Origin: Cyanophora paradoxa CCMP329
Taxonomy: Eukaryota > Plantae > Glaucophyta
Assembly (NCBI GenBank): GCA_004431415.1
Contig: QPMI01000409.1
Span: 372,001 to 436,000, forward strand
DNA: 64,000 bases
Direction: 5' to 3'
Part shown: one piece after another, positions 10,579 to 54,558 of the stretch
Numbering within the stretch: the stretch's first letter is position 1
Layout of the letters: every line of letters starts with the position of its first letter
Notes under the pieces: generated by a model
What the model was told of the DNA's origin: nothing
Database searches by the model: none
What the model saw: only the letters and a program-made list of their open reading frames with translations
Made by a program: the position numbers and the translations under genes

Positions 10579-13013
10579 ATGCAGGAGCCATACGATGTGT
10601 GTCCTTCGCAGGCCGCTCTCGCGAGCGATCTGACGCGGGCGGGCGCAGAGTCCCTTTTCGGGGGGCTATGGCTTTGGCGCAAACCCTTCGGGCCAGGTTC
10701 TTTCGTCGGGACATCATTCCGGTGAGGCCGCTGAGATCTGTTGGCGCATGATCGTGCCGTGAACCGCACGACCCCGCAGCGGCTGTCGGGCGCAGTACCG
10801 CCATGTCTCAGGGAGTCGGTAGGCTCGGTGCAGCAATACAGGCAGGGCAACCGAATATTGGGATGAACATCGGCAACCGCGGCATGGCTGCGGCGCTCAA
10901 CAATGTCACAGGACAGGTCCGCCGCGTACGCCGACTCGCACGTCGTCGATAGTCAGGGGTGCCGCGTCCTTTTCTTGCACGTTGGCCGACGGCTGGCGAT
11001 GCAGGTCGTTCCGCGTCCGGGCGTGGCTCCCGTGGGAGTCGGCGCAATCAATGGCGGCAGGAACGTAGCAATGAACGCGCTCAGCGGAAGGTCGATGGCA
11101 GCTGCAGTCGCGATGAATGCGGCCCAGAATCTCGGTGCAGCGAGCACATCAGCCGCGCGAATGAACCTGCAGGGCCCGCTGTCCGGGATGGGCAATGCAG
11201 GCGGCGTGGGCTACAATCCTTCCGGCGACTTGTTCGCCATGCTTAGCAAAGGTAGCACTAAGCTCTTCTGACTTGGCCCCGACGACTCTGACCCCGCCGC
11301 GCTCTAGGCCAGGGGTCGTACTTGCCGGGCGGTGTCGGGATGGGCCACGCACACAAGCTGGGGCTGGACGGGAAAGGTGCTTCTTCTTATCGAACTGCAC
11401 GCCGATGCGCACATTGTGCTGACGAATGTGCGGCGCGATGCAGGCGAGCAGCTCGACTCATCGCCATACGATCTTTCAGAGTTTCCCGCACTGAGTCGGC
11501 TACCGGGGATGAGCTCCTCGAATTCCTCGCAATCTGATGGCCAGCATGCTTTGGGATCCGGAAGGCTTCCGTACAGTGCAGCGGCTGCTGCGGACGCGGT
11601 AAGGCTGTGAAGGGGACATCAGCTTGGAAGCCTTTTCTTTGAGCTGCGGTCGCCCGCAGATGCCGACGTTCGCTGGAGTCGCGGCTATGAACTTCCCTCC
11701 ATTGAAGAATCAGACCGAGTTTTCCATACAAAGCGAAGACTTCCCCGCGTTGCCGGGTTTCAAGGGTGCGTTGTGGCAGCTTTTTTGTTTTTCATACCCG
11801 CATTTATCGTCCATCCTTCTCCAGAGCACTCGGGAGACGGGAGTCTCTCATCTTTGACGTCCCAGTCTCTTCAGGTTCTTTCCCTGCCCCGATTTGTCTG
11901 CAGCCATTGAATCTATTCTCAGGGGGCCTACGCTGCTTCGGTTGCGGGAAGCAAAGGATTGGCGCAGTCGCAGCAGTACATGGTATGCTGTTCTGCAAAT
12001 CGCTCACGCTTGCTCTTATGGCTTGCTGCAGCAACTCCTCTCTCAAAGCCAGCAGGCGGCGAGAGCAGGAGTCCCGGGGTCTAGCTTTGTCGGCTTTGAA
12101 CAACAGCAGGGCCAAGGACAAGGGCAGCCGCAGCCTCCGCAAGGTCAAGGACAACAACACCCGCAACATCCGTCTGCACAGCAATTGCCTGGAAGCCAGC
12201 TGTCGTTGAATCTACATGGACCTAGTCAAGGTCAACAGCTCGGTGGCAGGGTGGTAAGAGAGCCCTGTGCATCTGGGTGTGAGTTCGCCCTTATTTGCTC
12301 GGCAGTCGCCGGATTCGTCTGCTCCGGGCCAGCAGAAGGCTTCATCGATTCCGGATCGATTCGGCCTGCTTGGGCTGTTGAGCGTGATTCGAATGACAGA
12401 CCCTGATCTGAACACTCTCGCTCTGGGGACCGACCTGACGACTCTTGGCCTGAACCTCAACTCACCAGAGTATGTGTACATTCAGCTGGAATCACAAGAT
12501 CCATCCTAATTTTGCCGGGCAGATGTCTTTACGCCACTTTTGGCTCGCCCTGGTCCGATGGGCCCTCCAGACGCGAGCCAGAACTTCCTCCATGCTGTGT
12601 GTTATCTTGCTGTTGTCTATTCGTTCTCCATCTAACTTGCATACATCAGATTATCTCGTCCCGCCACAGCTAAAGACTCAGCACTTTGCTAAGTTCCAAC
12701 TTGAAACCCTGTTCTATATCTTCTACTGCATGCCTCGAGATATGCTCCAACTTTGCGCATTTGATGAACTGTGCGTCTGAACAGTCACACCCTCGCCCAG
12801 CATTTGCTTATTCCCTGGCTCAGGTACAATCGCGAATGGAGGTATCACAAGGCAATGAAGCTGTGGTTCCTACGCTCAGCGTCGGAATGGGTCGTCTTTG
12901 ACGTCAATGCATGGGAGAAAAAGGCATGGGCAGGCCCAGCATCAAAGGACAGCTTGGAAGCGCAGTTTATGACACGGGAGGAGGCCAGGAGCTCAGCAAC
13001 TGTTCAGCGGTAG
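10579..13013 (+). CDS. NOT2: CCR4-NOT complex subunit NOT2 (CNOT2/VIP2)
   Basis: DRFGLLGLLSVIRMTDPDLNTLALGTDLTTLGLNLNS, LYATFGSPW, FAKFQLETLFYIFYCMPRD and YNREWRYHK (NOT2/3/5 domain); FSIQSEDFPALPG motif. Start codon is tentative. Confidence 0.93.
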
Positions 13014-13195
13014 ACCTGCTCTCTTATTAGCTATTTACAAAGCTTGTACCTTTCAGTTGCTTGTTCTCAGGAGGCTGTGTGTGCATGTAGCAGCTTGCCC
13101 TCGTGGGTGTGCTGGCCAGTGCCACGGTGTGATAAATGGGACCCGGGACGTGAAAACGTGGTCCGATGGTCACTGTCGCAGAGAAGGCCAAGCGC

Positions 13196-13283
13196 TTACG
13201 ATCAGAATCAGAGTTGCGATTACGATCGGAATCAGAGTTGCGATTACGATCGGAATCAGAGTTGCGATTACGATCGGAATCAG
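13196..13283 (+). repeat. 24-bp tandem array (cagagttgcgattacgatcggaat), about 3.6 units
   Basis: Visible directly; no spacers. Confidence 0.95.
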
Positions 13284-13290
13284 TCCCTGA

Positions 13291-13389
13291 ACCAGTCCCT
13301 GCGGGTTATGCTCTCACCCAAACAGCACGGGTACAGTTAAAGCGCTGTAGGTAGGAGGTCCGGCGCGCCCGTAGCGTAAAAAGAGCATT
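13291..13389 (+). ncRNA. Putative omega-RNA (Fanzor guide-RNA scaffold), copy 2
   Basis: Homologous to the sequence 3' of the TnpB/Fanzor stop. Nested complementarity: ATGCTCT(13308-14)/AGAGCAT(13383-89), ACGGG(13327-31)/CCCGT(13368-72), GCGCTG(13342-47)/CGGCGC(13361-66). Confidence 0.55.
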
Positions 13390-13421
13390 GAGTCTGTAAT
13401 GGAGTTCGCAGGAACCCTCTC

Positions 13422-13612
13422 CAGAGTTGCGATTACGATCGGAATCAGAGTTGCGATTACGATTGGAATCAGAGTTCAACGGTTGCGATTACGATCGGAA
13501 TCAGAGTTGCGATTACGATCGGAATCAGAGTTGCGATTACGATCGGAATCAGAGTTCAACGGTTGCGATTACGATCGGAATCAGAGTTGCGATTACGATC
13601 GGAATCAGAGTT
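13422..13612 (+). repeat. 24-bp tandem array, about 7 units; two units carry an 8-nt insertion 80 bp apart
   Basis: Same unit; variant gagttCAACGGTTgcg at 13477 and 13557. Confidence 0.95.
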
Positions 13613-13877
13613 ACTATGGGGGCGGAGGGGAGAGGCGATCGGATCGAGGGGGGAGGCGGAGGGGGGAGGCGGAGGGGGGGGAAGGGGGGGGGGGAGGGGG
13701 CTTCCAGGATAGGTTCCAGGTCGCTCACGCCGCCGGGCTCCGATCCCATCACAGCCCCGAGCCTCGCCGAGTCGGAGCTCTAGATGACCCCGCTGCGCAT
13801 GCACTCATGATCAGTGACTGTGCACCGTGGCAACCGTTGAACCGTTGTGCAGGCACCGTGCACCTGTAGCCTAGTAC

Positions 13878-14120
13878 TAGTAGCCAGTGTCCGCAGGCAG
13901 GCACATTACTCCCCGGAGGGAGGAACTTGGCAACGTTAACGTTAACGCAGCCGCGGCCTGCAGGGCCTGGCCATGGCCGGAGGGGCCCAGCTGGCCGGGC
14001 CAGGCGAGCTCAGTGGGCTCAGCGCTGGGCCCCGGCCGGGCCCACAGCCACGGCCGCTGCAGTGTACATCCCACATGTAGCCTGGACTGTCGGACGTTGC
14101 AATTTAGTCCGTGCCCAACT
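13878..14120 (+). repeat. Degenerate copy of the 3' half of the ~480-bp dispersed repeat
   Basis: tagccagtgtccgc...cattactc...gcagtgtacatcccacatgtagcctggac is colinear with 20479-20615. Confidence 0.6.
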
Positions 14121-14295
14121 GCTACAAAGAGCACCACACAATGAACGGGATGCGTGAGAGAGCACTCGACACAAACTAAAAAAACTAGGTGCTGTTGTAG
14201 GCCATGTTCGGAATCAAAGACGCTGTTGCACTCGTTGTATGGGCATTCGAAGGGAAACTCGTGCTTCGTGGGCACTAGTATGGGCATGTGACTCG

Positions 14296-15423
14296 TTAGT
14301 CTGTGAGTTTTCGTTTGAAAAACTCGAAGGAACCCATCGACAGACTGCCCCCAGGAGCAGCCTGCAAACAGCGGGCGCTGATGCCCTTTGCAAACGATTG
14401 AATCCCTTCCTCTCTCAGCATTCCGATCGCAATGCTCCACCAGCCACGATTGTTCTGAACTTGAAGACGTGTCTTGACCTGTACATGGACAATCAGCGAA
14501 ATTCCCTTTGAAAGAGAATCAAACAAAGCACCACATCCAGAGGGTTCGTTAAAGCTGCCGCCGCTGTTGATGCCACTGCAGCACATCCGAAAAACACAGT
14601 TGCAGGTGGCTGATCGCCCCACATTTTGATTGCGCCTCGCTTGAGATATTCATAGGAAGTGAAGTAGATGGCGGTTTGAGGCCCGAAGCTGCTTAGACAA
14701 GCCAAGTATCCACGAAACAGGCCACGGAAGCCGTTTTGCTCCACGATCGCTTGTAAAGTTGTCGAAGCTTTGTAGTACTCCGGGCCAGCCCGCACCTGCA
14801 TCCCTACAATACTTGAGTACTACATGAGCACCGACAACAACACTTACGCTGTTTGGACACATCCATGGGTACCCAAAGCACTCCAGAGACCACCTCTGCG
14901 CACAAGCCGCTGTGATCGCGGGGTAAGTGAACGCGCTGTGATAAGTGAACCAGAGACCACCTCGCAAGGTACGTGAAAGCGTTGTGATCTGCGTCTTCCC
15001 CAAGGTGCTTCTTCGCCAACTCGTACGTGCCGAAGAAAGTCGCCTGCGTCAGTCAGCACTAAACCGTTTCTCGGAAGCATCATGCATACCGATGCAAAAG
15101 GCGTAAAGCCGAGGGCAAGGGAATACCCCCGATAAAGCCCCACAAGGCCTTCAGCTCGAATCAAATTACGGGCAAGCTCCCGGAGAGCAATCTTTTCGCG
15201 CTGCACTTGCATGCAGGCACGCAAGGTGTCGAAAGGGTGTATGAACGAGCGTGATACGACGCCTGCGGCCCCCGCCGACACGAGGACGGCCGGGGAAAAA
15301 CCGGCTCTCGATTTCGACGAGCTCGCCTCCACTGCAGCCGGGCTGCGGAGGCGTCAGGTGTAAAGCATGCATGCCAGCGCTGTATCGGCGGTTCTGGCGC
15401 CGGGATGGCAGCGCGCGACCCAT
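14296..15423 (-). CDS. Mitochondrial carrier family (SLC25) protein
   Basis: Three PxDxx[K/R] signatures: HPFDTLRACMQ, VPMDVSKQRMQ, NPLDVVKTRLQ; also EGLVGLYRG and NGFRGLFRG. Start codon is tentative. Confidence 0.93.
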
Positions 15424-15622
15424 GCGATTGAAGATGGGCGGCGCCTCGCGTGTGGTGTCACGACGAGTATGGTGCGGCGGCGCGTACGGTGCGGCGGCGA
15501 CTAGTAGCTAAGACCGCGAGCGCGAAACGGTGGCGGCGGCCGCAAACGCACCCTGGCGCGCCGGACGTGGATTCCCGCGGGGGCCCGCTCATTGCGAGGG
15601 AATTGTGCGTGGAGCGGCAGCA

Positions 15623-16755
15623 ATGACAGGACAGCGAAGACAGGACTCTCAAACTGTCGGACTCTGTCACTGTGAGCTTTGGGGGGTACGCCAAAGTTAA
15701 CAAGAACTGGCGATGCCGCTTCTCGCATCGCAGCCGCTGGCGGTGCCCAGCCGGTTTCTTGCTGAGCAGGGCCCGCTCGGTGAGCTGCATGGAACGATCC
15801 GCCGGGCCTTGCTTCGGCCTCGCTGACTGGCTCGCAGTCGCCCTGCAGCTAGGCGAGCCACTATGGGCGCTCGGAAAGATGCGCGACGTGTTTACCTTGT
15901 GCGCCGAAATCTCCATCATCGTCGACGCTCAGCAGGTCAGCGCCGCGGCCCTCAGCGGGTGCACGAGCTGTGCGTCTCACTGCGCGGTCATTCAGACTCA
16001 GAACAAGCATTCACTGGAGGCGCAAAAGAGGGAGCTGTACGAGAAGCTTGCTAAGATAGTGCTCCGGCGAACACCGCATGCTCCCCTCATTGTGCGCCTT
16101 CCGCTGCCCACATCACCTCTCGAATAGGGTGACACTCCTCCCATTCATACGTCCGTCGCAGCGCGCGCTGGATGACCTCGGGCTGTCGTCATGGTTCCCG
16201 AGCATCATCGCTGACCTCACAGGGACGCCGCGTGCCGCGTCGGCTGACAGCCCGCTCCCGCTCAAGGACTACCTCCAGCACTTAGGCGTCCTAAACCAAA
16301 CTATCGTCATGGCGTCCCAGTTGCGTGAGGACATGCACCTGTCCAACCACAAATACATCGCACATCAAATCGCTCTTCTTTACGTGCGAATTTGCAGGCG
16401 CTGTTCGTGTAGAGTCCGTTAAGTTCCGAGGGACTGATGCTCTTGAACAGCAATGCCTCAACGGCATAAGGACAGGTGTCGAGACGTTCAAGAAGAGGAT
16501 TGAGTCCCGTTTCGAGGAGATCAAAGCTGTAACCGAGCAGTCCCAGTGCCCTCAGCTCTCCGAATCACAGAAGCAGTGGTATGTTATGCCAAAAATACTT
16601 CGCTGTTTCCGAATTCTGAAATCTCTCTCAGGCTCCTGGATCTCTGTGCAGACGTTATCGTCGCAGCAAACAAACTTCCATCGGGTATGCTCAAGAAGGT
16701 GGAGCCGAACATCGTCCCAATATCTGAGCTCGACAAAGCGAACAAGCTGTTGTAA
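15623..16755 (+). CDS. Conserved hypothetical protein, multi-exon
   Basis: Coherent spliced helical protein including NHKYIAHQIALLY|QCLN and FKKRIESRFEEIK; TAA at 16755. Start uncertain. Confidence 0.6.
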
Positions 16756-17140
16756 ATTCGTGCATGAAACTGCGGGTTACGCTTTTGATTCCTGCGGGCC
16801 ACGGGCAATTTTTACTCTCCGAGTTTCCCCGCTGCCCCAATTGCAACCACTACCGCCTTTTTTGCCGTTAGTAGCGGTCTGCTGCGGTCATAGCAAGCGC
16901 TAGCGCTAGCTCAGCGGTTATGAATTAGCTGCATCTGTGATCTACGCGTACGACTGGGCACACTTAAGAGAGTACATATATACGTGTACGGCCCTCGCCG
17001 GCCGTTGCTGGTCCGGCCGTCCAGCGAAATTAAAGAGCGATCCCAGCCCCCCTCCAGGCCTTGCAAGGTGCACCGTGTAGTGCACCGCGGCCGCTGCGAG
17101 GTTTTACGTGCGCACTGGTACTTTAGAAGAGAGCCAAAAC

Positions 17141-18689
17141 GTGGATCGCCCTCCGGCGCCGTATGCTGTCCTGCGCGGCCACGTCAGCGATGTGACCTCC
17201 GTCTCCTTCGACCCTGCATCCTCGCAGAACCTCGTGTCCGGGTGCGCGCGCCCAAGGCGTGCGCTCCGGGCGTCGGATCTGAGTTGTGATGCAGTTCTTC
17301 GGACGGGACCCTGCGCCTGTGGAACCTCGCAGTGCGCCGCACGGCCGCCACAGCTTCGCTTCCGGCGGGATCGCGTGTTTTGAGCACCGCATACGTGGCG
17401 CCGGGCTCATTTGTCAGGCGCCCTACCGCGGCACGCATTATTTACGCGCGTTTGCTGAGCGCCGGCGGCGCAGCCAGGAGAACGATGGCACGCTTCGCTG
17501 TTGGAGTGCGGATTCGTCGGCCCTCGTTGAGCGAGACCAGCTGCCTCTCCATCCATGCGAGCATACTTTCTGTCGTATCGCAGTGCTCGCAAACGGTACG
17601 CTGAGCGCGCAGCTTGCACTTGCTATTGCTCATCACAACAACGCAGGTCACAACTCCTTCATCGCAGCACCCGCGCAAGAAAAGAATAAGGTAGGGCAAA
17701 AGCAAAATTTGCAGATCCGAAAGTCCGAAAGTAGAAGCAGATCGTCGTGTACGACATGAATCGGGGAACATTGGTCCAGTCATTCACCCTGCAGCCAAGC
17801 TGTGGTGTGCGGATGTAAAATTTTGCTGCAGGTCAGAGCCATCTATTGACCACTGGGTCTTCAGGAATGGCGATGGCGCTCGCTCTTGCTTGCAAGCCAG
17901 GGACCGCCGAACCTCTTTGTTTCATTGGATCAGAGGACGGGACTGTTCGTGCTTGGGACTTCGTTCGAAATGTGTGCGTGTCTTCCTCTCCAATCGCCGA
18001 AGGAAGCACAGAGCCAGGTCTGAAAACGTTCTTTATTGTCAGTCTACATGCTCTCTGTATGTAGAACACAGCTTGTCGTGTTCCAGTTCTGGCTTTATCT
18101 GCGGGCGTGTGTGGAAATGGCATCCAAATCCTTGCAGGAGGGCCAACGGACCAGCTTTCCGTCCTCCTTTCTGACGATAGAGTAAGTTGTGCAGTACCTC
18201 GTTTTTTCGAATTATCTTTCTGATGCCAGAGTAGGAATCTCTTGTTGTGAAGAAGCAGATGAAGCTACCAAGATCTGGGGTTTCAGAGATTGCTACTCGA
18301 TCTGATCTGGCAATCGTGGCTTGTGCAGGCTGGGACTCGAGGTAATCCATTTTTTGATACATCAAAGAACTTTTGGCCCTTCTCTTAGACTCGAATATCT
18401 TCGTCGATGTCTGCCAGAGTGAGGATTTTCAGCTGGAAATCCACCCGACCACTCGCAGTGCTTGCTGGCCATGTGGATGCTATCAACACTGCTGCATTTT
18501 CTTCCGATGGCAGCGTTCTTGCTTCCGGATCAAAGGATCACAAAATTGCACTCTGGTAAGAGGCAACTCACTCTGTTTCTCGATCGTAGTCGATTGATGC
18601 CTCTTTTTATGTTCTCGGTCAGGTCCATATTCCAGGAACCACCCATTTTTGCTTCAACAACTGCTCTTAGCAAAACGGTGGTGCAATAG
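17141..18689 (+). CDS. GNB1L: WD40 protein, ASA1/GNB1L (plant DSE1) family; apparent GTG start
   Basis: RPPAPYAVLRGHVSDVTSVSF, GMAMAL, IGSEDGTVRAWD, GVSEIATRSD..IVACAGWDSRVRIFSWK..PLAVLAGH, LASGSKDHKIALW. Confidence 0.85.
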
Positions 18690-18878
18690 CTCGCCACGAA
18701 TAGCTAGTTTAAGCGCCAAATTGTGTGGAATGGTTTCAATAGCTATCCGATTGCCAGCTCTCCCCTCACCCCACGCTACGAATCCACCAGTGCTTGCAAA
18801 GAGCAAAAGCCAGCGTGATGCCATTGAAGACAAGAGTGTCCGGGACAATGTGGACTGCAGAGACGCATAGCGTGGTCT

Positions 18879-19340
18879 CTACTCGCTCTCCTCGCTGCGG
18901 AGGCGCGCGTTGCCATTGGTGAGGGCAACGCCGAGCTGGGCCGCGCGCTCGACGATCGCCTTGCGCTGACGAGTGGAAACGTTGCTGGCGATCTCGCCAA
19001 CGAACTTCCGGTTGTGCATGAGCAGGAGCTCGACGTCCTTCAGGTTGTTCAGCGCGAACTTGTAGAGGCCGTTCGGGAGCATGTGGCGGGTCTTCTTGTT
19101 CGAGCCATAGCCGATGTTGGGCATCAACAGCTGGCCCTTGAACTTCCGGCGCACGCGGCTGTCAATACCCTTCGGGCGGCGCCAGCTCGGCTGCGATCGA
19201 GAGCGTCAGCGATTCGCGAAGCGCTGTCACACAAGCTGCTCGAAGCTAACCTTGACGGTTGCCCGGCGGTCCGACTGGTGGCGGACGAACTTCTTCGACC
19301 GCTTCTTCACGATCGGGCGCTTAACCACCGGCGAAACCAT
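18879..19340 (-). CDS. RPL32: 60S ribosomal protein L32 (eL32)
   Basis: [25 protein letters not shown]...[37 protein letters not shown]...NARLRSEE; one coding intron and one 5' UTR intron. Confidence 0.98.
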
Positions 19341-20017
19341 CTGCGGGGAGGCCGGGGACCGTCAGGAACGCTTCAACCTGACTAGAGCACGCTGCGGCAC
19401 GCTCGTGCCGGCCGCTGGGAGCGCGTGCCCGCACCTTGTCCCGGTTTGCTGGCTTTACCCCCAACAGGACGGGGGGGGGGGGGGGGGAGCAGAAGAGTTG
19501 CAATTGGACCGCACCTTTCGCCGAGTCGAGTCTGTGACTGTCGAGGTACGCGTCTATAGCTAGCTCGAGTCTAGATCTAGATATCGATATCGATCTGGTG
19601 CATCCGACGGTTCGAATTCGAAAGCTCGTCACAATCGATAATATATTTGAGGCCACTGGCGCCTTGCAATTGCAAGTATTACCACGCCACGGCATAGCGC
19701 GGCGGCTTTGAATGCATATAGACTAGGCTACAGTATATTAGCTGGCCTGGGGTAGACCTAGGCCTAGGGTAGACAGAAAACGATGTTTTTTGTGTACCAG
19801 GGGCTCTGTCCCCTAATAAACTACGGAGAACTCAAAAAAAAGCTTTGAATGCATATCTAGATCTAGAATCGTAATCAGATCCGACCACTAGCGCTAGCGT
19901 CGAAATCGAAATCAAAGCCCAACCCCAAATCTGAGGCCGAGGTAGTTTACAGGATCGGGCATAGCGTTGTTGTGATGAGCAATAGCAAAGTGCAAGCTGC
20001 GCGCTCAGCGATTAGCC

Positions 20018-20240
20018 TTGTAGGACGTCTTCGATCTGCGATTACGATTAGGGCGCCTTTGATCTGCAGCTGCGATTACGGTTAGCTAGGGCGTCCTTGA
20101 TCTGCGATTACGATTACGATTAGGACGTCCTAGCTTTGATCTGCGATTACGATCGTAATTAGGACGTCTTAGCTTATAATTAAAGCTTTGATCTGCGATT
20201 ACGATTATCGATTAGCTAGGGCGTCCTTGATCTGCGATTA
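20018..20240 (+). repeat. Degenerate tandem array, core gatctgcgattacgattagggcgtcctt, related to the 24-bp unit
   Basis: About 6 imperfect units sharing tgcgattacgat. Confidence 0.8.
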
Positions 20241-20641
20241 CGGAACTAGAAAGTTGGACGAAAGTTGCATATGCAATTGGAAGAAAGTTGGAAGAAAGTT
20301 GGACGCAATTGGAACGAAATTTGAAGTTGGACGAAAGTTGGACGAAAGCAGTTGCGTACCCCTGCACGCTAACAACAGACCAGCGCTACAGCTAGCTCCC
20401 GCCCCTAGACGACCCCCCGCCGCCACAAGACGCGATGCAGCACCACGCCGCGCATGCAGGCACATGTAGCTATTTAGCTAGCCAGAGTGTCCGCGGGGAG
20501 GCGCATTACTCTCCTTAGGGGGCCACGCAGGGCCCGGCCGGCCAGTTTGCTGGTGGGCTGGGCCCGCGGCCGCGGCGGCCGCAGTGTACATTCCCACACT
20601 TGTAGCCCGGACCTGCGTTTTGAGTACGTGTCCAAATGCGA
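20158..20641 (+). mobile_element. ~480-bp dispersed repeat (non-autonomous element fragment), copy 1
   Basis: Near-identical to 26604-27101; contains an internal gaaagttggac mini-array (20249-20347). Confidence 0.85.
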
Positions 20642-22733
20642 ACCCCATCCAACGAAATTGACGAAGTCCCAACCCGCCCAACTCCTTCCAACCAGATCGC
20701 GATCGACATCGATATCGCATGCGCAGTTCAGCCCCTTCAACTTCGTCATCAGAGAATGCAGGTAGATGGCTAGCTATGGAGGTGGATGAAAGTCCCCTAG
20801 CTCTGGATAACAAGGATCCCATTACCAGGACATGTCCAGCGACGCTGTCTTCACGTCCATTACGCGACCCTCTACGGAGAGGAAGCTGTTGGTCTGCCAC
20901 CAGCTTGAGACCTGGAAGATGAGCGTGAGATTCAAAGTGTCCGCCGCAAGGGCACACATCAGCCGCACATCCAAGATGGTCGGGAGTGCCCTCCTTGCAT
21001 TCCGCACCCCTGCATCATCAAAGAGGCGGGATATAAATTGTTGAGCTTGCTGTGGTCCCACAACTCCAACAGCAGTGGGGAATCGAAGAATTCTGTGGCC
21101 CCCATTCTGAAACACGCTTCTCTCTCGCATCACACGGCTGTCAGAATGTAAGTGCACACTGACGGTGCAGATAGTTCAAAGAGCACCAGGGAGTCCACTT
21201 CGTGCCAGGTTCGTTTACCTGGTAAAATGAGCTGTCAGACTGAGAATCACAATTTGTGGGTGGGGCGCACAAAGAACAGATCGTGACGAGTCACCGAGAA
21301 CGTGACTTTGTGGAATGACAGGCAATGTTCAAAGAGATTCTACAGAAAGTCAAGAGTAGAGCACGTGGTCCGCACATGGCCTTTTTGCACCCGAATACTT
21401 GCAGCAGTGAAGTCATAGCAAGAGTCCAGGCGCAACGACCGCAACTTCCCAAACTCTGTTCGCAGTGAGCAAGGGCAGCAACATTTACACATTGTGAAAG
21501 CATAATGCACCTGCCAAAATATCCAGCACTGCATCATTCACATACCGGTGAAAGCTAACCTCCTCCAGATTTTTACCCCTCTTAGCAATGCTGGAACAAA
21601 TGGTAAGCATTTGGAGTCTGCGTGCTGCGGCGAAATTAGGGTGAAACCGAAACAACCTTTTCATCGCCTCGTAAGCTGCAAGCAAAGAGGGGTAAGGGAG
21701 CGAGAGGGGGACGGGAGGGGAAGGGGTGGGCGGGGAGGGGAGGGGAGCGTGTGTGGGGAGGGGGGGAAGGAGAAGGGGGGATGGGGGGGTATCAAGTGTG
21801 TTCATAGGCTCACCAATCTGCTCGGCCTCAGGTCCGACCCCCAGAACATCGAGATCAAGCTTCTTCAACCGCTTCGTCAGCTTCGCTAGTCTTTCAGCCT
21901 GCAGCAGATTGATAGGGGCAATGGAGATAGAGCCAAATGAGCGATCACCTTGGCGCTCGAGAAGTATACCTTAATCCGAAGCGTTCCAAGCTGCTTGCAT
22001 GTGCGAGTCAAGCTGTACAGGAGAGCCTCCGTGTTCAGTGCTGGGACTTGCGAAAGATCTGCTGACACTAAATGGCGCAATTTGTTGCCTGGAAATGTGA
22101 GCCCTCTCGGATGGCCCGGCTGCAGGTGGAACAGCTCCATGCTTGCGGACGACACAATTACCCTGCAAAGCTGATTAAGCGTTCAGGCGACCACTTGGAC
22201 GCAGAGATCGAGAAGCTTGCCGTCCCCAGGGCCATCGTAGTCTGATTGTCTCGTGCCAGTCTTTGCATACCAGCGAAGCTGCTGTCGACTGAGCGGCACG
22301 CAAATGAAGACAAAGGAGAGGAAAAAGCGTCGTGCACCGAGCTTGCGCGTGTCCTTGTCGACGTATGCGAAGATCTGAGGGTGCGTGTCATAAGGCACAC
22401 ATTGGCCCGGCGGCAGGCCGCGCCTTCGTTAGAATGGCTCTGTCAATCGACGTCACGATTCGCTCCAGTCGATCCGACGCGTCCTCTGAAGCGCTCGTCG
22501 CAGCTGAGACAGACTTCTGGTCCGCTTCGAGCTTCCAGCAACGTACGGGATCCATGCACCTGTGCGAATGCTCGCCCGCATTCCTGTTCATCGCTCAGCT
22601 TCGGGCGGGCCTTTGCTGGCGGAGCGATTGAGGCAACGCGCCTCTCGGGGCGCTCGCAGCCTCCTGTCAGGCTAAGGATGAAGTCCCTGAGCACCCATCC
22701 CAGCGCAAGGCCAAGCACCACATGCGGATGCAT
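20642..22733 (-). CDS. F-box protein with LRR/RNI-like C-terminal region; the 3' end runs into the repeat
   Basis: F-box-like PYDTHPQIFAYVDKDTRK...ASLVCKDWHE; downstream LRR-like segments LRHLVSADLSQV, TCKQLGTLRI, LKKLDLDV and KNLEEVSF. Both ends uncertain. Confidence 0.65.
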
Positions 22734-22955
22734 GACGGCGGAGGCACGCCGCGGCAGCGGCAGGTCGTCGGCACGGACGAGCGGGATTGGTTGCCAGCGT
22801 AGCGTGCGAAAGGAGCTAACGGCTTCTACGTGTTGTTTACGTAACAAACGCCCTCCCACGCGCGCTGGTCGAGGCGGGCGAAGGGGGCCCAAGAGCTAAG
22901 CCGGGGGGTACATTCGCAAACGGCACAACAGCCTCGCCCGAGCACCGTAGCGCAA

Positions 22956-26603: not shown

Positions 26604-27101
26604 ATTAGGACGTCTTAGCTTATAATTAAAGCTTTGATCTGCGATTACGATTATCGATTAGCTAGGGCGTCCTTGATCTGCGATTACGGAACTAGAAAGT
26701 TGGACGAAAGTTGCATATGCAATTGGAAGAAAGTTGGAAGAAAGTTGGACGCAATTGGAACGAAATTTGAAGTTGGACGAAAGTTGGACGAAAGCAGTTG
26801 CGTACCCCTGCACGCTAACAACAGACCAGCGCTACAGCTAGCTCCCGCCCCTAGACGACCCCCCGCCGCCACAAGACGCGATGCAGCACCCCGCCGCGCA
26901 TGCAGGCACATGTAGCTATTTAGCTAGCCAGAGTGTCCGCGGGGAGGCGCATTACTCTCCTTAGGGGCCCGGGGGCCACGCAGGGCCCCGGGCCCGGCCG
27001 GCCAGTTCGCTGGTGGGCTGGGCCCGCGGCCGCGGCGGCCGCAGTGTACATTCCCACACTTGTAGCCCGGACCTGCGTTTTGAGTACGTGTCCAAATGCG
27101 A
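26604..27101 (+). mobile_element. ~480-bp dispersed repeat, copy 2 (inverted diverged fragment at about 26300-26352)
   Basis: Near-identical to 20158-20641. Confidence 0.85.
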
Positions 27102-30194: not shown

Positions 30195-30638
30195 GCGGCG
30201 TCCTTGAGAATCTGCGATTACGATTAGGTAGGGCGTCCTTGATCTGCGATTACGATCGAGTGCGCCCCCGTTTGTTTTGATTTTGGATTACGATCTGACC
30301 CCTCTTCGCGAGAAGAAGAAGAGTATGTATAAGACACGCCCAAGCCCCTCTTCGCGCCCACCGCAGGCTGACCTCATGTCGGGCCCCCTCCATGGGCCTG
30401 TAGGGGCTCCCGCCACCGCCCCTAGACGACCCCCCGCTGCCACACTGTGACAAGATCTAGACGCGATGCAGCACCACGCCGCGCATGCGGGCACATGTAG
30501 CCTAGTAGCTATTTAGCTAGCCAGAGTGTCCGCGGGGAGGCGCATATGCATTACTCTCCTTAGGGGGCCACGCAGGGCCCCGGGCCCGGCCGGCCAGTTC
30601 GCTGGTGGGCTGGGCCCGCGGCCGCGGCGGCCGCAGTG
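30195..30638 (+). mobile_element. Partial copy 3 of the dispersed repeat (array 30195-30297; shared block about 30406-30638)
   Basis: Colinear with 20395-20586, with several palindromic micro-insertions. Confidence 0.8.
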
Positions 30639-43981: not shown

Positions 43982-44338
43982 ATGAATGTCGAGCACGAAG
44001 TCAGTCTACTTCAGCAGAAGATCGTGGAGCTCGGCTCACGGGGCGCGGACGGCAAGTACTCGTGCGTATTGCTTATTGCAGGCGGCGCAATAAGCTTTTT
44101 AAAAAAGTTTTTCCAGTATCACATTCGGGAAGTTGTTCGAGGCTACTGAGCAAATTTTTGAGGCCCTCGGCGGGACCCTCAAGGCCGCGAAGAAGGTGCG
44201 TACGGTAGCTATGGCTAGATACAGCAATAACGTCGGTCCGCCGGGCCGCAGCGCGGCGTCATCGCGTACTCTGCTCCGCTTCTCCTGAAAGGAGCCCACG
44301 ACGCGGAGGTCATCACGCTTCTGGTCGCCCCTGCCTAA
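43982..44338 (+). CDS. ABRACL: Costars family protein
   Basis: MNVEHEVSLLQQKIVELG...ITFGKLF..EQIFEALGGTLKAAKK|RGVIAYSAPLLLKGAHDAEVITLL; two introns. Confidence 0.93.
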
Positions 44339-44417
44339 AGCCAGCAGCTCTGCGGGGAGGCGGCGTGCCAATCCATCGCTGCGCAAATTGCGCGACGGGG
44401 TGCGAATGCGGGGGGAC

Positions 44418-44511
44418 ATTCACTGGGTGTGTCCTAATCTTCAAACTTTTGAAATGCATTGAAGCACGACCAGAATCAGAGTTGCGATTACGATTCTAAA
44501 AAGAGCAGCAA
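44418..44511 (+). mobile_element. Mini-element: CACTG-type end + one 24-bp unit + right-end-like taaaaagagca
   Basis: Matches 30644-30684 (inverted), the 24-bp unit, and 13377-13388. Confidence 0.55.
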
Positions 44512-44678
44512 CATGAATGTGCCACCAGCAAGCTGGCCAGTGCCACGGTGTGATAAATGGGACCCGGGACGTGAAAACGTGGTCCGAGGGTCACTGTCGC
44601 AGAGAAGGCCAAGCGCTTACGATCAGAATCAGAGTTGCGATTACGATCGGAATCAGAGTTGGACCTCGGAATCAGAGA

Positions 44679-45021
44679 GTCTGCGAGGCCTGGACCTCGA
44701 AGACGTGCGGGGTGTGCGGCAAGATCAACTACGGGCTCGGCTCGAAGAGGGTCTTCGAGTGCCGCCCCGGGTGCGGCTTCCGGGCGGACCGCGACGGCGG
44801 CGCCGCGCGGTGCGTGTTGTGTCTATACACGCCTATACACAATCGCTGCTCCCCCCGCCTAGTCCCGACACGGCCTAGCCACGGCATAATTTTCCGTCTA
44901 GGCCTAGGGCCGGCTCGCCCCTCCCAGCGCCGCCCGATCGCAATCGTAATCGTACTCTTGCAGGAGCATCTTCATCCGCTACGGCACAGGCGTGGACGCG
45001 AAGCGCCTGCTCGGCTCGTAG
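44679..45021 (+). pseudogene. TnpB/Fanzor nuclease C-terminal fragment (zinc finger + RuvC-III), two exons (44679-44809, 44964-45021)
   Basis: Spliced: VCEAWTSKTCGVCGKINYGLGSKRVFECRPGCGFRADRDGGAAR|SIFIRYGTGVDAKRLLGS*. Matches the E-x-[YW]-TS-x-T-CxxCG...F-x-C-x(2-3)-CG-x3-DRD-x-N-x-A-x-NI pattern. GT-AG intron at 44810-44963. Confidence 0.88.
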
Positions 45022-45159
45022 CCAGCTAGGCTCCCATCCCCTTTTCTCCATCAGGGCACCAGTCCCTGCGGGTTACGCTCTATCCCAAACAGCACGGGTA
45101 AAGTTAAAGCGTTGACGGTCTAGGAGTGGTCCCGCGCGCCCGTAGCTTAGAAAGAGCAT
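45022..45159 (+). ncRNA. Putative omega-RNA scaffold 3' of the Fanzor ORF, copy 1
   Basis: Lies between the stop codon and the element end; 45058-45159 is conserved at 13291-13389; stems gctct/agagc and acggg/cccgt. Confidence 0.6.
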
Positions 45160-45390
45160 GCAATTTGCGCCCTCGTGCCCCAGTTGTGCGGCAGCCCGCC
45201 ACTGATTCCTCCACAGTCCCTCTTCCTTTTAGACGGGCTCTCAACCGCCCCCAGTTACGCGTGACATTGTCGAAAATCAAAGCGCGTTGGAAAACATGGA
45301 ATACATCAAGACATCATCGACATGCACCAAGACATCATGACTAGCTATAATAAAGTAAAGGCTGCAGAGCTGAAATTAAAGGGGGGCCGC

Positions 45391-46688
45391 CTAGCTCGAG
45401 GAAAGCGGCTTGGAGGCGGGCGCGTCTGGGCACGGGGCGGCGGAGAGGTGGTGGCAGCAACCGGTGTCGGGGATGCGTCGGTGCTGCTCGAGGAACGCGA
45501 TATCGGGCCTCTTAAGGTTCCGGACGAGGCCGAGGGCAGCGAGGGCTTTGATCACGTAGTAGCTAATGTCCAGCTCGTACCAGTAGAAGCCGTTCCGCGC
45601 CACGTTTGCCTTGGCGTGGTGCTGCTCGGCGAATAAGAAACCGAAAGAAAAGAAAAGCGTCGGAGAAGCTTACGTTGTTGTGCCAGCCCTCGCCGAGGGT
45701 GACGAGGGCGAGGATGAAGTTGTTCTTGGCGGAGCAGGCGGTGTGGTGCTCGCAGACGAAGCGCTGGGAGCCGTACATGTGGGAGAGGGAGTTGATGGTG
45801 TACGTGCCGTGCCAGAGCAGCACGGTCGAGACGACGAAGCCCCAGAGGAAGGCGTCGAGCCCGCCGAGGGCGTAGAGACCCGCCGCCAGCAGCGCTCCCG
45901 GAACGTAGTGGTACCTATCGATCCACACGAGCTCCGGGTAGCGCGCCAGGTCCGGAATGTACTTCCTGTGAGGCCGCCCGCTCAGACCTCGCTGCATGCG
46001 GCCGCGGGGGCGGGGGCCTCGGGAGCGGCGCACCAGATCACGTCGACGTGCTCGTATGAGACGAGGAACCAGCCGCAGTGCGCCCACCAGAAGCCCTTCA
46101 GCTTAGGCGAGTGGGCGTCCTCTGGCTCGTCCGCGAACTTGTGGTGGTGCCGATGGTTCTGCGCGGTCGAAGCGCCGTCGTCGGCCGAGGGTCCGAGCTA
46201 AGCGCAGGGCGGCCGGGATGCGCACGCTAGCCCACCACAGGACCCCCTTTTGTATCGCCGTGCTGCCCAGGCACGCCAGCAGGAACTGGAAGACTGCGTG
46301 CGGGGTTTGCGTCAGAGCCCCGAATGCACGTGCGCGCTGATCGGGCGCGCGGGGCACCTCGACTGGTGTCGTAAGCGCGATGCGAGAAGTATCGGTGATA
46401 GCCACCCGTGATGCCCCACATGCGGATTACGTAGAGCCCAATACAGAGACCAAGCAGTGGCCAGGAGGGCCGCGTTGCATACGCCGCTGCGGCTGCGGCT
46501 ATGTGCATACCAGCGAAAAACCAGCAGTTGGGCTCCGTCGCGAGCTGACGCCAGTTGGGTCTCACGCTCTCGACATCGACGGCCCTCGGGTCGGCCTCTT
46601 TCGGAAGGGGGTCGTCATCAGCCGCGGCGAACAGATCTGCACGGCTGCACGAAGCTGCTATAGCTACGCTATCTGCGTTAGGCGCCAT
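45391..46688 (-). CDS. Delta-9 fatty acid desaturase (membrane-bound, no cytochrome b5 fusion)
   Basis: His boxes GYHRYFSHRAY, HRHHHKFAD and GEGWHNN|HH; also QKGVLWWA, INSLSH and ELDISYYVIK. Confidence 0.95.
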
Positions 46689-47301: not shown

Positions 47302-50188
47302 TTAACCAAAACTAGTACTACCGGTACTGGTTCCGTAATAAAAGCGGCCGCTTGCAATTGAACTGCTAGGATCGAGTCCAGGGTTGGGGGCGGAAGGGCT
47401 AACATGTACACTAGCTGTAGCTAAAGGTAACAGAGTCGCTGGTGCGCATGCGAGTGGTGGGATAGGTGTGGGCGCCGTCCCAGGGGGACGCTCGAACGGG
47501 GCAGGCGCGAGCTGGAGACCGTAGGGGTTGGGAGGCGGGACAGCCTCTGCTGCTGCCCAAGGGGCCGGGGAAAGGGGGGGAGGAATCACGTACGAGAGTC
47601 CTGCCCTAGGGATTGAGAGATGCAGGGAAGGGGCGGCCGCTGAAGAAGAGCGCGGCCGCAGCCTGGGGGCGATGGGTGCTGGGGCGCTACGCCACTTAGC
47701 AAGTGCTTCTGCTTGCCGGACCTTCTTCCCTCTGGGCACGTCGGGGACGGGGGCGGCGGGTTCCGAGCCGGGCCGGGGGACGATGGGTCGTAGGGACGCA
47801 TATTGGCGGCCTGGAATGGCACCCGAGCTCGGCTCGAAGCTCGAAGTCACCGCTGGGCTTGGTGGGGCAGCCGGGGTGGCGAGAACACGATGTCCCGCCG
47901 GCGACGCGGGGTACCAGTGAGCGGCCGCGGCCTTCTCCCCCGAGGCCGACGCCGCCCTCCGAGCGGCGCCGGGCGCGGGCCTTCCCCATCTCTGCGGCGG
48001 CAAGTGGCGACGGCGGCGGCGAGGCGTCGCGCGCCGGGACAGCCGGTGACTCCGCGAGCGACATCGCCTCCAGCTGCAATGACAGGTCTAAAGAAGCCCG
48101 CATCGCCTCGCCCGCCTGGCCCGCAGCATTAGGCCGGTGTTTCAGTGCGCGGCGCGGCGCGGTCCAGGTACCCTGGAGAGGAAAGCGAGCTGCTTCACTT
48201 CCTCCAGTTCCGGTCGGATCTCGTGCGAACCGCGTACCCCTTCGGACGATGGGCCCTAAGGGCAGGGCACAGCTGAGCGCCGGCGGCGAGAGCAACGCGG
48301 AAGGCGGCGCGGGCGCTCACCTCGCTTGGAGTTTCTGTTCTCGGGACCTGCAAACGTTGGCGCGCACAAGTTTCAGTACTAAATTTAGATCCAGAAATCG
48401 AGAGCACCCGCGGCGCGACGGACGGAGGATGGGGGAGAGGGGGGGGGGGGGGGGGAGGGGGAGGGAGGGAGGGGGGAGGGAACGGGGGGGAATGGAAGGG
48501 GGGGAGGGGGGCCGCTCTCACCGGGAGGCCCAGTAGATCGTAGAATATTTCGTTCACTTTTGGCCCTGGCACCGGTGCTTCTGAGAAGTCGGAGAGGCCG
48601 CTTGACAATGTGAGGGAGCCGGGGGTGGAGGGCGAGCGCGGGGCCCAGGCGTGGAGGGAGAAGGACGAGGCGGGCTCATCAGCGGTGACGTTCCCGAGAC
48701 TGAGGCCGAGGCCGCGGAGGCGCGGGGCCGAGGCCGACCCGGAGGCGAAGATAGGAGAGGGCCGAACGCGCGGTCGCGAGTCCCCCGCGTATGCGTATCC
48801 GCACTGCCGCGCATGTTCTGCCACTAGAATTCGGCGTATCTGGGTGGCCGCGATCAGAGCGCTCGAAATGTCGAGCAGAGCACGTACCGTGAGCGTGTAC
48901 TTGGCGATGTTGCGGCTCATGATCTGGCAGACGACTGCAGGCACGACGACAGTAAGCTCGTGCACGGGGGATGGCGACGGAGGGGGAGAGGGGCGAGGAG
49001 GAGGAAGGGGAAGGCGGAGGGCGGGCAGGTGGGGGGAAGGGGGGGAGGGTGAAGAAGGGGGAGAGGGGGGGGGGGGGGGGGAATGATCTTCAAAGCAACT
49101 CACTTCTTGAAGACAAAAATCCGAGAAATGACGGGCTCCGGTGGATTACGCTCAAAGTGGTGCACCTGTGGGTCAAGCGGGGAATCAAGGGTCCAGGTAC
49201 ATCGCACGACGTGGGGAAACCAACTCACCGGCACCCCACCCCGCCGTCACCGCGGGCGACGTGCCAGGCTGCGACCGGTTTTGGGTGCTGTACCATGTGA
49301 CGCGCCGTCCTGGTGGGCACGGTTTGCGCCAGGCAGGGCGCGCGGGCGGCCCGGCGGAGGTGGGCGCGCACCAACAGTCCCCTTCGCGCACGACGTACGC
49401 GAGAATCGCCAGCGCCGAGCCGTCGGGGAGCCTAGGAGGACAGGGTCACCGGAGAGCAGGCGCGATAGGAGCGAGGGGGCCGGCGCGCGGGGCGAAGAGG
49501 GGAGGGGCGCCGGCACCTCCTGCTCGCGTGGATGAAGCGAGATTCGATGCGCCATCCTGGTGCGTGCGTGCGACGGCAAGTGGTGAGCTTTTCAGCGCCT
49601 CGTCAGGAGGGCGGGCGCGGGCGGAGGGCCGCACCGAAGTAGGAGAGGACGTGGCGGTGGACGCGGACAGCGCCGAGCGAGCACGGGTCGTCCAGGTCCG
49701 CAGGCTCCAGCTCAGCGAGCTCCTCGTCGACCACCACGAGCTCCGCGTTGAACTCCTGCCCCCGCCGTTTCCGCACGGGATCCCCGGCCCAGCGCGGACA
49801 CAACAAGACGCTGGCGCACCGTCGCCCTGGAGCGTGAGCAGAGCTCACGTGTAGCGAACGAGACGCTGACGTCGGGCAGATGAAGGCTTGCTCGATAAGC
49901 CGTGTATTGATCCGCGGACGGCCACGCGCTGGTTTGCAAGTCAGCTCGCGGCACTAGAGCTACCTCGCGGTACAGTACACACCGCGCTTCAACTGCGATT
50001 GCGTTGCCCGCGGCCTCAAGCGAGACCTTCCATGGCGGCCCTTGGCTTACAATCTCCCGCCCGACAATTTGGAACAACTGCGCATGCGCGGGCACCGAGC
50101 TCGCCAGCTCAGCCGGAGAAGCGATCATAGCTACAGCCACAAACATATGCACCTCATCTAGATCAGTACGGCTGTAAGTTGAGTGCAT
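47302..50188 (-). CDS. Hypothetical protein, tandem paralogue A (possible START/SRPBCC-like domain followed by a Pro/Ser-rich tail)
   Basis: Minus-strand exons with conserved splice sites, e.g. AWHVARGDGGVGCRCTTLSVIHRSPSFLGFLSSRIVCQIMSRNIAKYTLTIRRIL. The domain call is weak. Confidence 0.5.
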
Positions 50189-50808: not shown

Positions 50809-53426
50809 CTACGCGAACTGACGTCGACTGATGATCTGCTCTAAAGGACTCGCTGTAGAAAAAGAATTCGAGGACTCCGGCGTGAGTGCAGGTGGCCATG
50901 GTGGAAAGAGTGTGACGGGGGGTTCGTCTGTTTCAGGGGGGTTCGTTTCTGCCGCCAGTGCGTGACGTCCCTTCTTCCCTCTGTGCTCGTACGCGTCGGG
51001 GACCGGGGCGGTGGGTTCTGAGCCGCGCCGGGGGACAATGAGCCGGAAGGGTTGAGCAGCCGGCCCAGCGGGCCCCGGGCTCGAGTCGCCGCTCGAGCTG
51101 GAAGCTGGCCGTGGCGGGGCCTGCATAGAGCGATCTCCCGCCAGCGACGTCGACGCGGGGTACCAGTGAGCGGCCGCGGCCTTCTCCCCCGAGGCCGACG
51201 CCGCCTCCGAGCGACGCCGGGCGCGGGCCTTCCCCATCTCTGCGGCGGCAAGTGGCGACGGCGGCGGCGAGGCGTCGCGCGACGGGGCAGCCGGTGACTC
51301 AGCGAGCGACATCGCCTCCAGCTGCAGTGACAGGTCGAAGGAAGCCCGCATCGCCTCGCCCGCCTGGCCCGCAGCATTAGGCCGGTGTTTCAGTGCGCGG
51401 CGTGGCGCGGTCCAGGTACCCTGGAGAGGAAAGCGAGCTGCTTCACCTCCTCCCGCTCCGGTCGGATCTCGTGCGAACCGCGTACCCCTTCGGACGCTGG
51501 GCCCTACGGGTAGGGCACAGTTGGGCGCCGGCGCCGAGAGCAGCGCGGCAGGCGGCGCGGGCGCTCACCTCGCTTGGAGTTTCTGTTCTCGGGAGCTGCA
51601 AACGTTGGCGAGCGCAAGGTTCAGCGCTGGGGGGAGGGGAGGAGGGCGAGGGGGGGGGGGGGGGGGGGGGGGAACGGGGGGGAATGCGAGGGGGGAGGGG
51701 GCCGCTCTCACCGGGAGGCCCAGTAGATCGTAGAATATTTCGTTCACTTTTGGCCCTGGCACCGGTGCTTCTGAGAAGTCGGAGAGGCCGCTTGACAATG
51801 TGAGGGAGCCGGGGGTGGAGGGCGAGCGCGGGGCCCAGGCGTGGAGGGAGAAGGACGAGGCGGGCTCATCAGCGGTGACGTTCCCGAGACTGAGGCCGAG
51901 GCCGCGGAGGCGCGGGGCCGAGGCCGACCCGGAGGCGAAAAACAGTGAGGGCCGAACGCGCGGTCGCGAGTCCCCCGCGTATGCGTATCCGCACTGCCGC
52001 GCGTGTTCTGCCACTAGAAGTCGCCTTATCTGGGTGGCCGCGATCAGAGCGCTCGAAATGAGGAGCCGTGCACGTACCGTGAGCGTGTACTTGGCGGCGT
52101 TGCGGCTCATGATCTGGCAGACGACTGCAGGCACGACGACAGTAAGCTCGTGCACGGGGGATGGCGAGGGAGGGGGAGAGGGTCGAGGGGGAGGAAGGGG
52201 AAGGCGGAGGGCGGGCAGGTGGGGGAAGCTTAAGGGGGGAGGGGGAAGAAGGGGAGGGCGGGAAGGGAGAGGGCGGGAAGGGGGGAGGGTGAAGAAGGGG
52301 AGAGGGGGGGGAAGAAGGGGAGGGGGGGGGGAGCCGGGGGGGAGGGGGGGGAATGGTCTTCAAAGCAACTCACTTCTTGGAGACAGAAATCCGAGAAATG
52401 ACGGGCTCCGGTGGATTACGCTCAAAGTGGTGCACCTGTGGGTCAAGCGGGGAATCAAGGGTCCAGGTACATCGCACGACGTGGGGAACCAACTCACCGG
52501 CACCCCGCCCCACCGTCACCGCGGGCGACGTGCCAGGCTGCGACCGGCCTCGCGTGCTGCATCATGTGACGCGTCGTCCTGGTGGGCACGGTTTGCGTCA
52601 GGGCGGGCGCGCGGGCGGCCCGGCGGAGGTGGGCGCGCACCAGCAGTCCCCTTCGCGCACGACGTACACGAGAATCGCCAGCGCCGAGCCGTCGGGGAGC
52701 CTAGGAGGACAGGGTCGGCCGGAGAGCTGATGCGATAGAAGCGAGCTCGCGAGGGGGCCGGCGCGCGGGGCGAAGAGTGGAGGGGCCGGCACCTCCGGCT
52801 CGCGTGGATGAAGCGAGATTCGATGCGCCATCCTGGTGCGTGCGTGCGACGGCAAGTGGTGAGCTTTTCAGCGCCTCGTCAGGAGGGCGGGCGCGGGCGG
52901 AGGGCCGCACCGAAGTAGGAGAGGACGTGGCGGTGGACGCGGACAGCGCCGAGCGAGCACGGGTCGTCCAGGTCCGCAGGCTCCAGCTCAGCGAGCTCCT
53001 CGTCGACCACCACGAGCTCCGCGTTGAACTCCTGCCCCCGCCGTTTCCGCACGGGATCCCCGGGACAGCGCGGACAGGACAACGCTGGCGCACCGTCGCC
53101 CTGGAGCGCGAGCAGAGCTCGCGTGTAGCGAACGAGACGCTGACGTCGGGCAGATGAAGGCTTGCTCGATAAGCCGTGTATTGATCCGCGGACGGCCACG
53201 CGCTGGTTTGCAAGTCAGTTCGCGGCACTAGAGCTACCTCGCGGTACAGTACACACCGCGCTTCAACTGCGATTGCGTTGCCCGCGGCCTCGAGGGAGAC
53301 CTTCCACGGCGGCCCTTGGCCGATAATCTCCCGCCCGACCGATTGGAACAACTGCGCATGCGCGTGCGGGCTCCGAGCTGAGCGGCCGGAGAAGCGATCG
53401 ATATAGAAGCTCCGGCACATGTACAC
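50809..53426 (-). CDS. Hypothetical protein, tandem paralogue B
   Basis: Near-identical to paralogue A with a divergent 3' end; start uncertain. Confidence 0.5.
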
Positions 53427-54391: not shown

Positions 54392-54558
54392 ACTCTGATT
54401 CCGATCGTAATCGCAACTCTGATTCCGATCGTAATCGCAACTCTGATTCCGATCGTAATCGCAACTCTGATTGCGATCGTAATCGCAACTCTGATTCCGA
54501 TCGTAATCGCAACTCTGATTCCGATCGTAATCGCAACTCTGATTCCGATCGTAATCGC
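54392..54558 (-). repeat. 24-bp tandem array, 7 units, inverted orientation
   Basis: actctgattccgatcgtaatcgca x7. Confidence 0.95.

Follow-up and report, generated by a model that had tools for sequence, protein, structure and literature searches.

Fanzors are eukaryotic RNA-guided DNA nucleases that are sought as compact genome editors. As in TnpB systems, the 3′ part of their guide (omega) RNA is encoded by the right end of the element. To our knowledge, Fanzor2 has so far been found mainly in fungi, in a few animals and protists, and in giant viruses. Saito et al. (2023) list Fz2 in fungi, molluscs, choanoflagellates and giant viruses, and the RNA-guided DNA endonucleases NlovFz2 and MmeFz2 have an omegaRNA of a type located at the right end, overlapping the stop codon or following it (PMC10432273). 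The mimivirus protein L79 (ApmFz2, PDB 9B0L), an intron-less viral protein of 520 aa, has a catalytic triad of D324, E467 and D501, in which E467 is relocated with respect to canonical TnpB (PMC11832414). The canonical RuvC-II position is occupied by Pro or Gly in the Fanzor/pro-Fanzor lineage (bioRxiv 10.64898/2026.06.23.733943), and the pattern given by Yoon et al. (2023) is DPG-x(120,160)-E-x6-CxxC-x(12,18)-CxxC-x(4,8)-D (PMC10711439). In Chlamydomonas reinhardtii, the elements CRe-1, 2 and 3 carry Fanzor1 on Helitron2-like elements with a TTTT target preference and duplications of 7–19 bp (PMC3627910).

A literature search returned no report linking Fanzor or TnpB to Cyanophora or to any glaucophyte; Cyanophora is absent from the supplements of Saito 2023 and Yoon 2023, and no glaucophyte appears in the text of Saito 2023. 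Here, we describe a locus (44532–45159) in a 64-kb stretch of the Cyanophora paradoxa nuclear genome (the window, to which all coordinates refer) that is very probably what is left of an intron-bearing element of the Fanzor2 type, now dead and non-autonomous.

The coding tail

The features of the locus are as follows:

44532..44612, plus strand: left arm, 81 bp (99 % identity to 13111 onward; two copies by depth)
44613..44678, plus strand: two 24-bp minisatellite units and a degenerate junction stretch (TRF: period 24, 2.0 copies)
44679..44809, plus strand: 3′ part of the penultimate Fanzor2 exon (PF07282, ApmFz2 alignment)
44685–44687, plus strand: relocated catalytic Glu codon (alignment to ApmFz2 E467)
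44706, 44715, 44760 and 44772, plus strand: zinc-ribbon Cys codons
44793–44795, plus strand: RuvC-III Asp codon, the second Asp of DRD (alignment to ApmFz2 D501)
44799–44801, plus strand: Gly codon where Asn is usual, after DRDx
44810..44963, plus strand: spliceosomal intron of 154 nt, GT..AG, within the RuvC-III motif (RNA contig, EukProt model P0002)
44964..45021, plus strand: last exon, consisting of the third base of the split Arg codon, 18 codons and TAG (tblastn; equal to the C-terminus of P0157 and P0152)
45022..45159, plus strand: 3′ UTR and right end; the high-copy part, a candidate omegaRNA scaffold by position (contigs, word depth)

Together, 44679–44809 and 44964–45021 encode the C-terminal 62 residues of a nuclease of the TnpB/Fanzor type, with one intron between them. 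The plus strand from 44679 onward reads VCEAWTSKTCGVCGKINYGLGSKRVFECRPGCGFRADRDGGAAR, and the first exon part translates to VCEAWTSKTCGVCG...ADRDGGAAR. An Arg codon is split by the 154-nt GT..AG intron (44810–44963), after which the frame resumes in the last exon as SIFIRYGTGVDAKRLLGS and ends at a TAG stop codon (45019–45021).

The preliminary description of this DNA, made from the letters alone, had recognized the zinc ribbon and RuvC-III motif of TnpB/Fanzor, and the HMM search bears this out: the first exon part by itself (44679–44809) matches PF07282, the Cas12f1-like TNB domain formerly named OrfB zinc ribbon, above threshold (E value 1.3e-9, 38.5 bits, curated cut-off 26.3). Matches of the fragment to NCBIfam models were all weak, in the order IS607_TnpB, guided_TnpB and IS200_TnpB. 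Its best PDB match is 9B0L chain P (mimivirus L79, i.e. ApmFz2; E value 5e-6), ahead of a Cas12m, TranC and Cas12f/TnpB entries. In the alignment to ApmFz2 residues 466–506, a Glu falls on E467 and the RuvC-III Asp on D501, so that the fragment retains two of the three catalytic residues together with all four zinc ligands. The Glu stands six residues ahead of the first CxxC, as expected for the relocated residue, and the RuvC-III D-R-D motif follows the TNB domain as ADRD. The break is located two codons upstream of this Glu (44685–44687). The complete RuvC triad is consequently absent from the window copy, everything upstream of 44679, including RuvC-I, being gone, and tblastn detected no further Fanzor or element part within the 64-kb window, where no recombinase was seen.

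A HMMER search with 45 residues of the fragment returned 588 proteins at E values up to 0.001, nearly all with the pattern E-x6-CxxC...DRD; ten further relatives are metagenomic. The usual Asn of DRDxN had been described as replaced by Gly. This is correct, and the Gly is common to all family members, indicating a family trait rather than decay. Among ~134–145 database relatives, Asn occupies this position in 81, His in 21, Ser in 13 and Gly in 5, which makes Gly rare here without being singular to the family.

Family members in the Cyanophora paradoxa genome

EukProt lists the window's own product under Cyanophora paradoxa, in agreement with the glaucophyte host suggested earlier: model P0002 (tig00020554_g10927.t1), the top match of the HMMER search, is 100 % identical to the spliced product of 44517–45021 and uses the identical splice (intron 44810–44963). 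Nine more models of C. paradoxa, drawn from at least seven contigs, are found in the adjoining 90 % cluster; the majority are tails of 92–121 residues with differing cut points, while one model has 235 aa and one (P0157) 1087 aa. In the sister tails, conserved residues are substituted (DRD to DRN, Phe to Ser), and ends and reading frames are changed as well; the altered conserved residues and frames suggest that these are decaying copies.

The longest family model, P0157 (tig00000342_g24202.t1, 1087 aa), comes from the same genome. Its last 62 residues are identical to the window peptide, the stretch encoded by the last exon (44964–45021) being shared with P0152 as well. P0157 has DPG (RuvC-I) at residue 613 and, in the upstream stretch ...VIAPEFRTSQM..., a Pro aligned to ApmFz2 G416 (the canonical RuvC-II position), and it carries the complete RuvC triad. 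In profile comparisons, residues 931–1078 matched twelve compact relatives (99.9 % probability, 43 % identity), and residues 506–642 returned a match covering the WED strands and RuvC-I (95 % probability). A full-length gene had been predicted elsewhere in the genome, and in P0157 a C-terminus identical to the window tail is indeed tied to upstream RuvC-I and RuvC-II. P0157 is an unvalidated gene model. The distance from RuvC-I to the relocated Glu is ~415 residues, where 120–160 is usual; an insert of ~345 residues between RuvC-I and RuvC-II (about 660–940) is basic, of low complexity, and includes runs of Arg/Lys as well as a stretch rich in Cys/His; and the basic helix motif RRRY is present twice. 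The long spacing and the duplicated helix motif raise the possibility of a chimera; the insert may be real or the model may be partly chimeric. A search with P0157 residues 330–700 returned no second full-length model, a weak negative as P0157 itself is filed under a 121-aa cluster representative.

Contigs from public sequencing runs were used to examine splicing, the break point and copy number. Runs X15–X17 behave as RNA and run X1 as DNA, since the introns of the neighbouring Costars gene are skipped in the former and retained in the latter. One contig of RNA run X17 contains the Fanzor intron joint (44808>44963), which DNA run X1 lacks; contigs cannot tie a spliced or upstream-extending read to any one copy. 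Contigs of X1 (DNA) and X16 (RNA) extend to the left of 44679 by 27 letters that are unlike the window and encode EDPPCTLQL, the residues preceding VCEAW in P0003 and P0157, while a 1715-nt contig of RNA run X17 ends on 44679–44743. These contigs place a deletion junction at 44678/44679 and indicate that longer, transcribed copies exist. At the other side, several unrelated sequences follow 45158/45159 in different contigs, which locates the right end there.

Summed contig word depths, which are a rough and poor measure of copy number, amount in X1 to about 59–68 for single-copy flanks, about 1,850–2,130 for exon 1, about 7,300–22,900 for 44970–45173 and about 26,400 for the 24-bp unit, which suggests ~30 coding tails and ~300 right ends in the genome. 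The left-arm unitig (44532–44646) has a word depth of 114 in X1 against about 59 for single-copy sequence, corresponding to two genomic copies. Contigs of other copies also contained the joints 44956>45117 and 44658>44869, which represent more deletion derivatives, with 17–20 filler letters each. Given a full-length model, spliced transcripts, ~30 tails and ~300 right ends, the Fanzor2-like family is alive or was so until recently.

Relationship to Fanzor2, Fanzor1 and TnpB

The Fanzor2 type had been proposed for this tail, and the mimivirus Fanzor2 structure 9B0L was the best match not only of the fragment but also of P0157 (top PDB match, E value 1.3e-5) and of a profile of the family and its relatives. 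This profile matched ApmFz2 at 1.2e-55 over almost the whole length and ISDra2 TnpB at ~5e-18; neither the profile nor the fragment nor P0157 matched a Fanzor1 structure (8GKH) at E values up to 0.01. We file the family as Fanzor2-like, a putative assignment made by best solved relative. Both ApmFz2 and the family possess an E-x6-CxxC zinc ribbon, the LG-SK-F-C wording and ADRD; the relocated Glu and RuvC-III Asp align, and the RuvC-II position is non-acidic, being Pro in family members (this position lies outside the window copy). The two differ in that the Cyanophora family has introns, a second knuckle of the form CxxxC and Gly/Ser after DRD, where ApmFz2 is intron-less and has Asn/Asn. They also differ in length, with P0157 reaching 1087 aa on account of its long RuvC-I/RuvC-II insert compared with 520 aa for ApmFz2, and the window copy being a tail only.

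When compared with the pattern of Yoon et al. (2023), the family has the parts E-x6-CxxC and C...x(4-8)D and fits a relaxed version. The strict pattern fails because the second knuckle is CxxxC and, in P0157, because DPG and Glu are ~415 residues apart; both the knuckle spacing and the DPG-to-Glu distance of the Cyanophora family fall outside the published ranges (PMC10711439). IS607-family/pro-Fanzor TnpBs share the active-site arrangement with a relocated glutamate; however, they are prokaryotic and intron-less and are accompanied by a serine recombinase (PMC10711439). No recombinase was seen in this window. We would place the family in the same clade as NlovFz2 and MmeFz2 (PMC10432273).

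Arms, minisatellite and origin of the remnant

Two further features in the window are related to the locus:

13111..13389, plus strand: second copy without an ORF, comprising the left arm, 3.8 units of the minisatellite and the terminal ~107 nt of the right end
44466..44508, plus strand: possible third, minimal remnant (minisatellite unit and 11-nt match, read from the sequence)

Both ends of the element had been described as recurring at 13111–13389, and they do: 44532–44661 (130 nt) equals 13111–13240 at 99 % identity, and 45058–45159 (~102 nt) matches 13291–13388 at 86 %, with identity stopping exactly at ...GAGCAT. The two window copies are therefore 1 % apart in the left arm but 14 % apart in the right end, a discrepancy that a simple shared ancestry fails to account for. 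The 81-bp left arm is common to 44532–44612 and 13111–13191 and is present only at these two places, both within the window, indicating that it is not a family-wide terminus. No terminal inverted repeats were found between the left arm and the right end, and no convincing target duplication was apparent, the left and right flanks sharing GCAA only. When metagenome contigs were scanned for the exact pattern of the right-end core, there were 0 matches. The locus had been interpreted as an internally deleted copy. That it is truncated stands, as other copies continue upstream of 44679 as coding sequence; that it retains both true ends is uncertain, the supposed left end being a two-copy sequence.

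The break is bracketed by a 9-nt micro-duplication (44661–44669 and 44690–44698), and the copy at 13111 likewise has a 9-nt micro-duplication, in the form of a doubled CAGTCCCTG at 13278–13300. The 24-bp minisatellite unit, GCGATTACGATCGGAATCAGAGTT, is dispersed and reaches very high word depths in DNA run X1; in the window it forms arrays at 13192–13283, 13422–13612, 44613–44661 and 54392–54558 (minus strand). The minimal remnant at 44466–44508, located 23 nt upstream of the left arm, joins a single array unit to 11 nt that match the right-end terminus of the 13111 copy. Within the Fanzor intron, close to its 3′ end (about 44936–44955), a degenerate piece of the unit occurs in reverse orientation.

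Other repeats were observed in the window. A family of ~500 bp at 97 % identity, with copies 6.4 kb apart (20158–20641 and 26604–27101) and a partial third (30459–30638), contains a CTGCGATTACGAT motif reminiscent of the 24-bp minisatellite, and its copies are possibly terminal repeats of a larger element. A tandem segmental duplication of ~2.2 kb (92–95 % identity, spaced ~3.25 kb) spans 47896–50129 and 51145–53403. There are also many long G-rich (GGGGA/GGGGC) tracts, among them 13616–13722, 21678–21800, 48409–48524, 49010–49080 and 51618–51723, the first of which directly follows the minisatellite ending at 13612.

Of the element, the 62 C-terminal codons, the intron and the right end survive, and the WED, REC and RuvC-I regions were lost at the junction 44678/44679, where the tail now adjoins the 24-bp minisatellite and the 81-bp left arm. 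The manner in which the junction arose we infer from this arrangement: the 9-nt micro-duplication is the type of scar left by template switching in repair or replication. This could represent either an internal deletion in an element built of arm and array or, a tentative reading that we lean against while giving it appreciable weight, the landing of 5′-truncated tails in arrays. According to the latter, a 5′-truncated tail would have inserted by one end into or beside a pre-existing 24-bp minisatellite, and the left arm would simply be target DNA. The abundance data agree with such one-ended insertion, with word depth placing the left arm twice in the genome and the right end hundreds of times. 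So does the distribution of the array: Fanzor tails adjoin it at three different tail positions, it flanks the right-end piece of the 13111 copy on both sides (resuming 32 nt beyond), and elsewhere in the genome a third array-to-tail junction joins it to the tail at 44658>44869, with 17 filler letters. Most EukProt family models are, moreover, tails cut at different points, and CRe-1, 2 and 3 of Chlamydomonas are likewise 5′-truncated with over-abundant 3′ ends (PMC3627910). However, neither minisatellite nor a convincing target duplication follows the right end at 45160, the inverted array at 54392–54558 stands alone without any Fanzor sequence, and two independent landings of a tail beside the same 81-bp arm would have to be a coincidence.

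The right end as a candidate guide RNA

The right end (45022–45159) is located where Fanzor/TnpB omegaRNA scaffolds are encoded (PMC10432273), and by this position it is a candidate for that role. It is conceivable, although unlikely, that the remnant has been kept as a guide-RNA locus, in which the flank after 45159 would serve as the guide of an omegaRNA used by a Fanzor2 acting in trans. In addition to the position of the right end, RNA contigs cross the border between right end and flank at several copies (the contigs giving neither strand nor RNA ends), and a nested stem pair is kept in both window copies, nearly all of their differences lying outside the stems. Against this, single-sequence folding of the right end was no better than that of shuffles (z +0.5 to -0.1), the two-copy consensus fold contained no compensatory pairs, an Rfam scan of 44300–45400 returned no match at E values up to 1, and the 3′ UTRs of the two convergent neighbouring genes account for the local RNA coverage. 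We consider it improbable, too, that the ~300 right ends were spread by one-ended copying that favours 24-bp arrays and make up a dispersed omegaRNA repertoire, used in trans by a few full-length Fanzor2s, each with a guide derived from its flank.

Neighbouring genes and the annotated gene model

The convergent genes that flank the remnant are:

43982–44338, plus strand: Costars gene, upstream, in three exons (PF14705 positions 1–25, 27–52 and 53–76)
45566–46087, minus strand: fatty-acid-desaturase-like gene, downstream (PF00487, just under threshold)

The Costars introns (44062–44116, 55 nt; 44196–44251, 56 nt) are GT..AG introns that are spliced in RNA contigs. The contig of the Costars transcript extends to 44646 in both X15 and X16; the left-arm unitig has a depth of 6 in X17 compared with 121 for the Costars gene, so that read-through is minor.

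The annotated 116-aa model tig00020554_g10927 (44517–45021) is a chimeric ORF in which Fanzor sequence is confined to the last 62 residues. The 55 residues at its N-terminus merely render flank, left arm and 24-bp repeat as codons, and we therefore regard this gene model as an artefact. It is very unlikely to be a real, domesticated small zinc-ribbon protein: an uninterrupted spliced ORF does exist and is listed in EukProt, but besides its artefactual start it is without RuvC-I, it lies downstream of the Costars stop codon, within Costars read-through, and its sister tails have decayed through conserved-residue substitutions and frame changes. A functional mini-protein was rejected on these grounds. 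Finally, a chance cysteine-rich match unrelated to TnpB, to which weak secondary Pfam matches of the fragment to C1_2 and VWD might point, can be dismissed with near certainty, as the TNB match exceeds its curated cut-off, 100 % identity over the last 62 residues links the fragment to a protein with RuvC-I and WED homology, and nearly all of the 588 database matches at E values up to 0.001 display E-x6-CxxC...DRD.

Discussion

The remnant is thus very probably the debris of a larger element. The host genes on either side both point towards it with their 3′ ends, and any transcription across it would be read-through. Lacking RuvC-I, WED and REC, the window copy is unable to cut DNA and could at most supply RNA. 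By analogy with described systems, a full-length protein of the family would be directed by an RNA derived from the right end, which would guide its D-altE-D RuvC site to cut next to a TAM.

The family resembles CRe-1, 2 and 3 of C. reinhardtii in the fate of its copies, most of which are 5′-truncated and internally deleted in those Fanzor1 elements also, with 3′ ends that are intact and over-abundant (PMC3627910). Unlike them, it is associated with a Fanzor2-like protein and a 24-bp minisatellite at the junctions, and we saw neither Helitron features nor a clear duplication in the Cyanophora family.

The family is a known kind of nuclease in a lineage for which we found no report, and the locus itself is ordinary debris. 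Taken alone, the locus adds little and mainly corrects the C. paradoxa annotation, the 116-aa 'gene' being an artefact. A multi-copy, intron-bearing and transcribed Fanzor2-like family in a glaucophyte would extend the clade to the third lineage of Archaeplastida, and its truncated copies provide a natural series in which the decay and spread of such elements may be studied.
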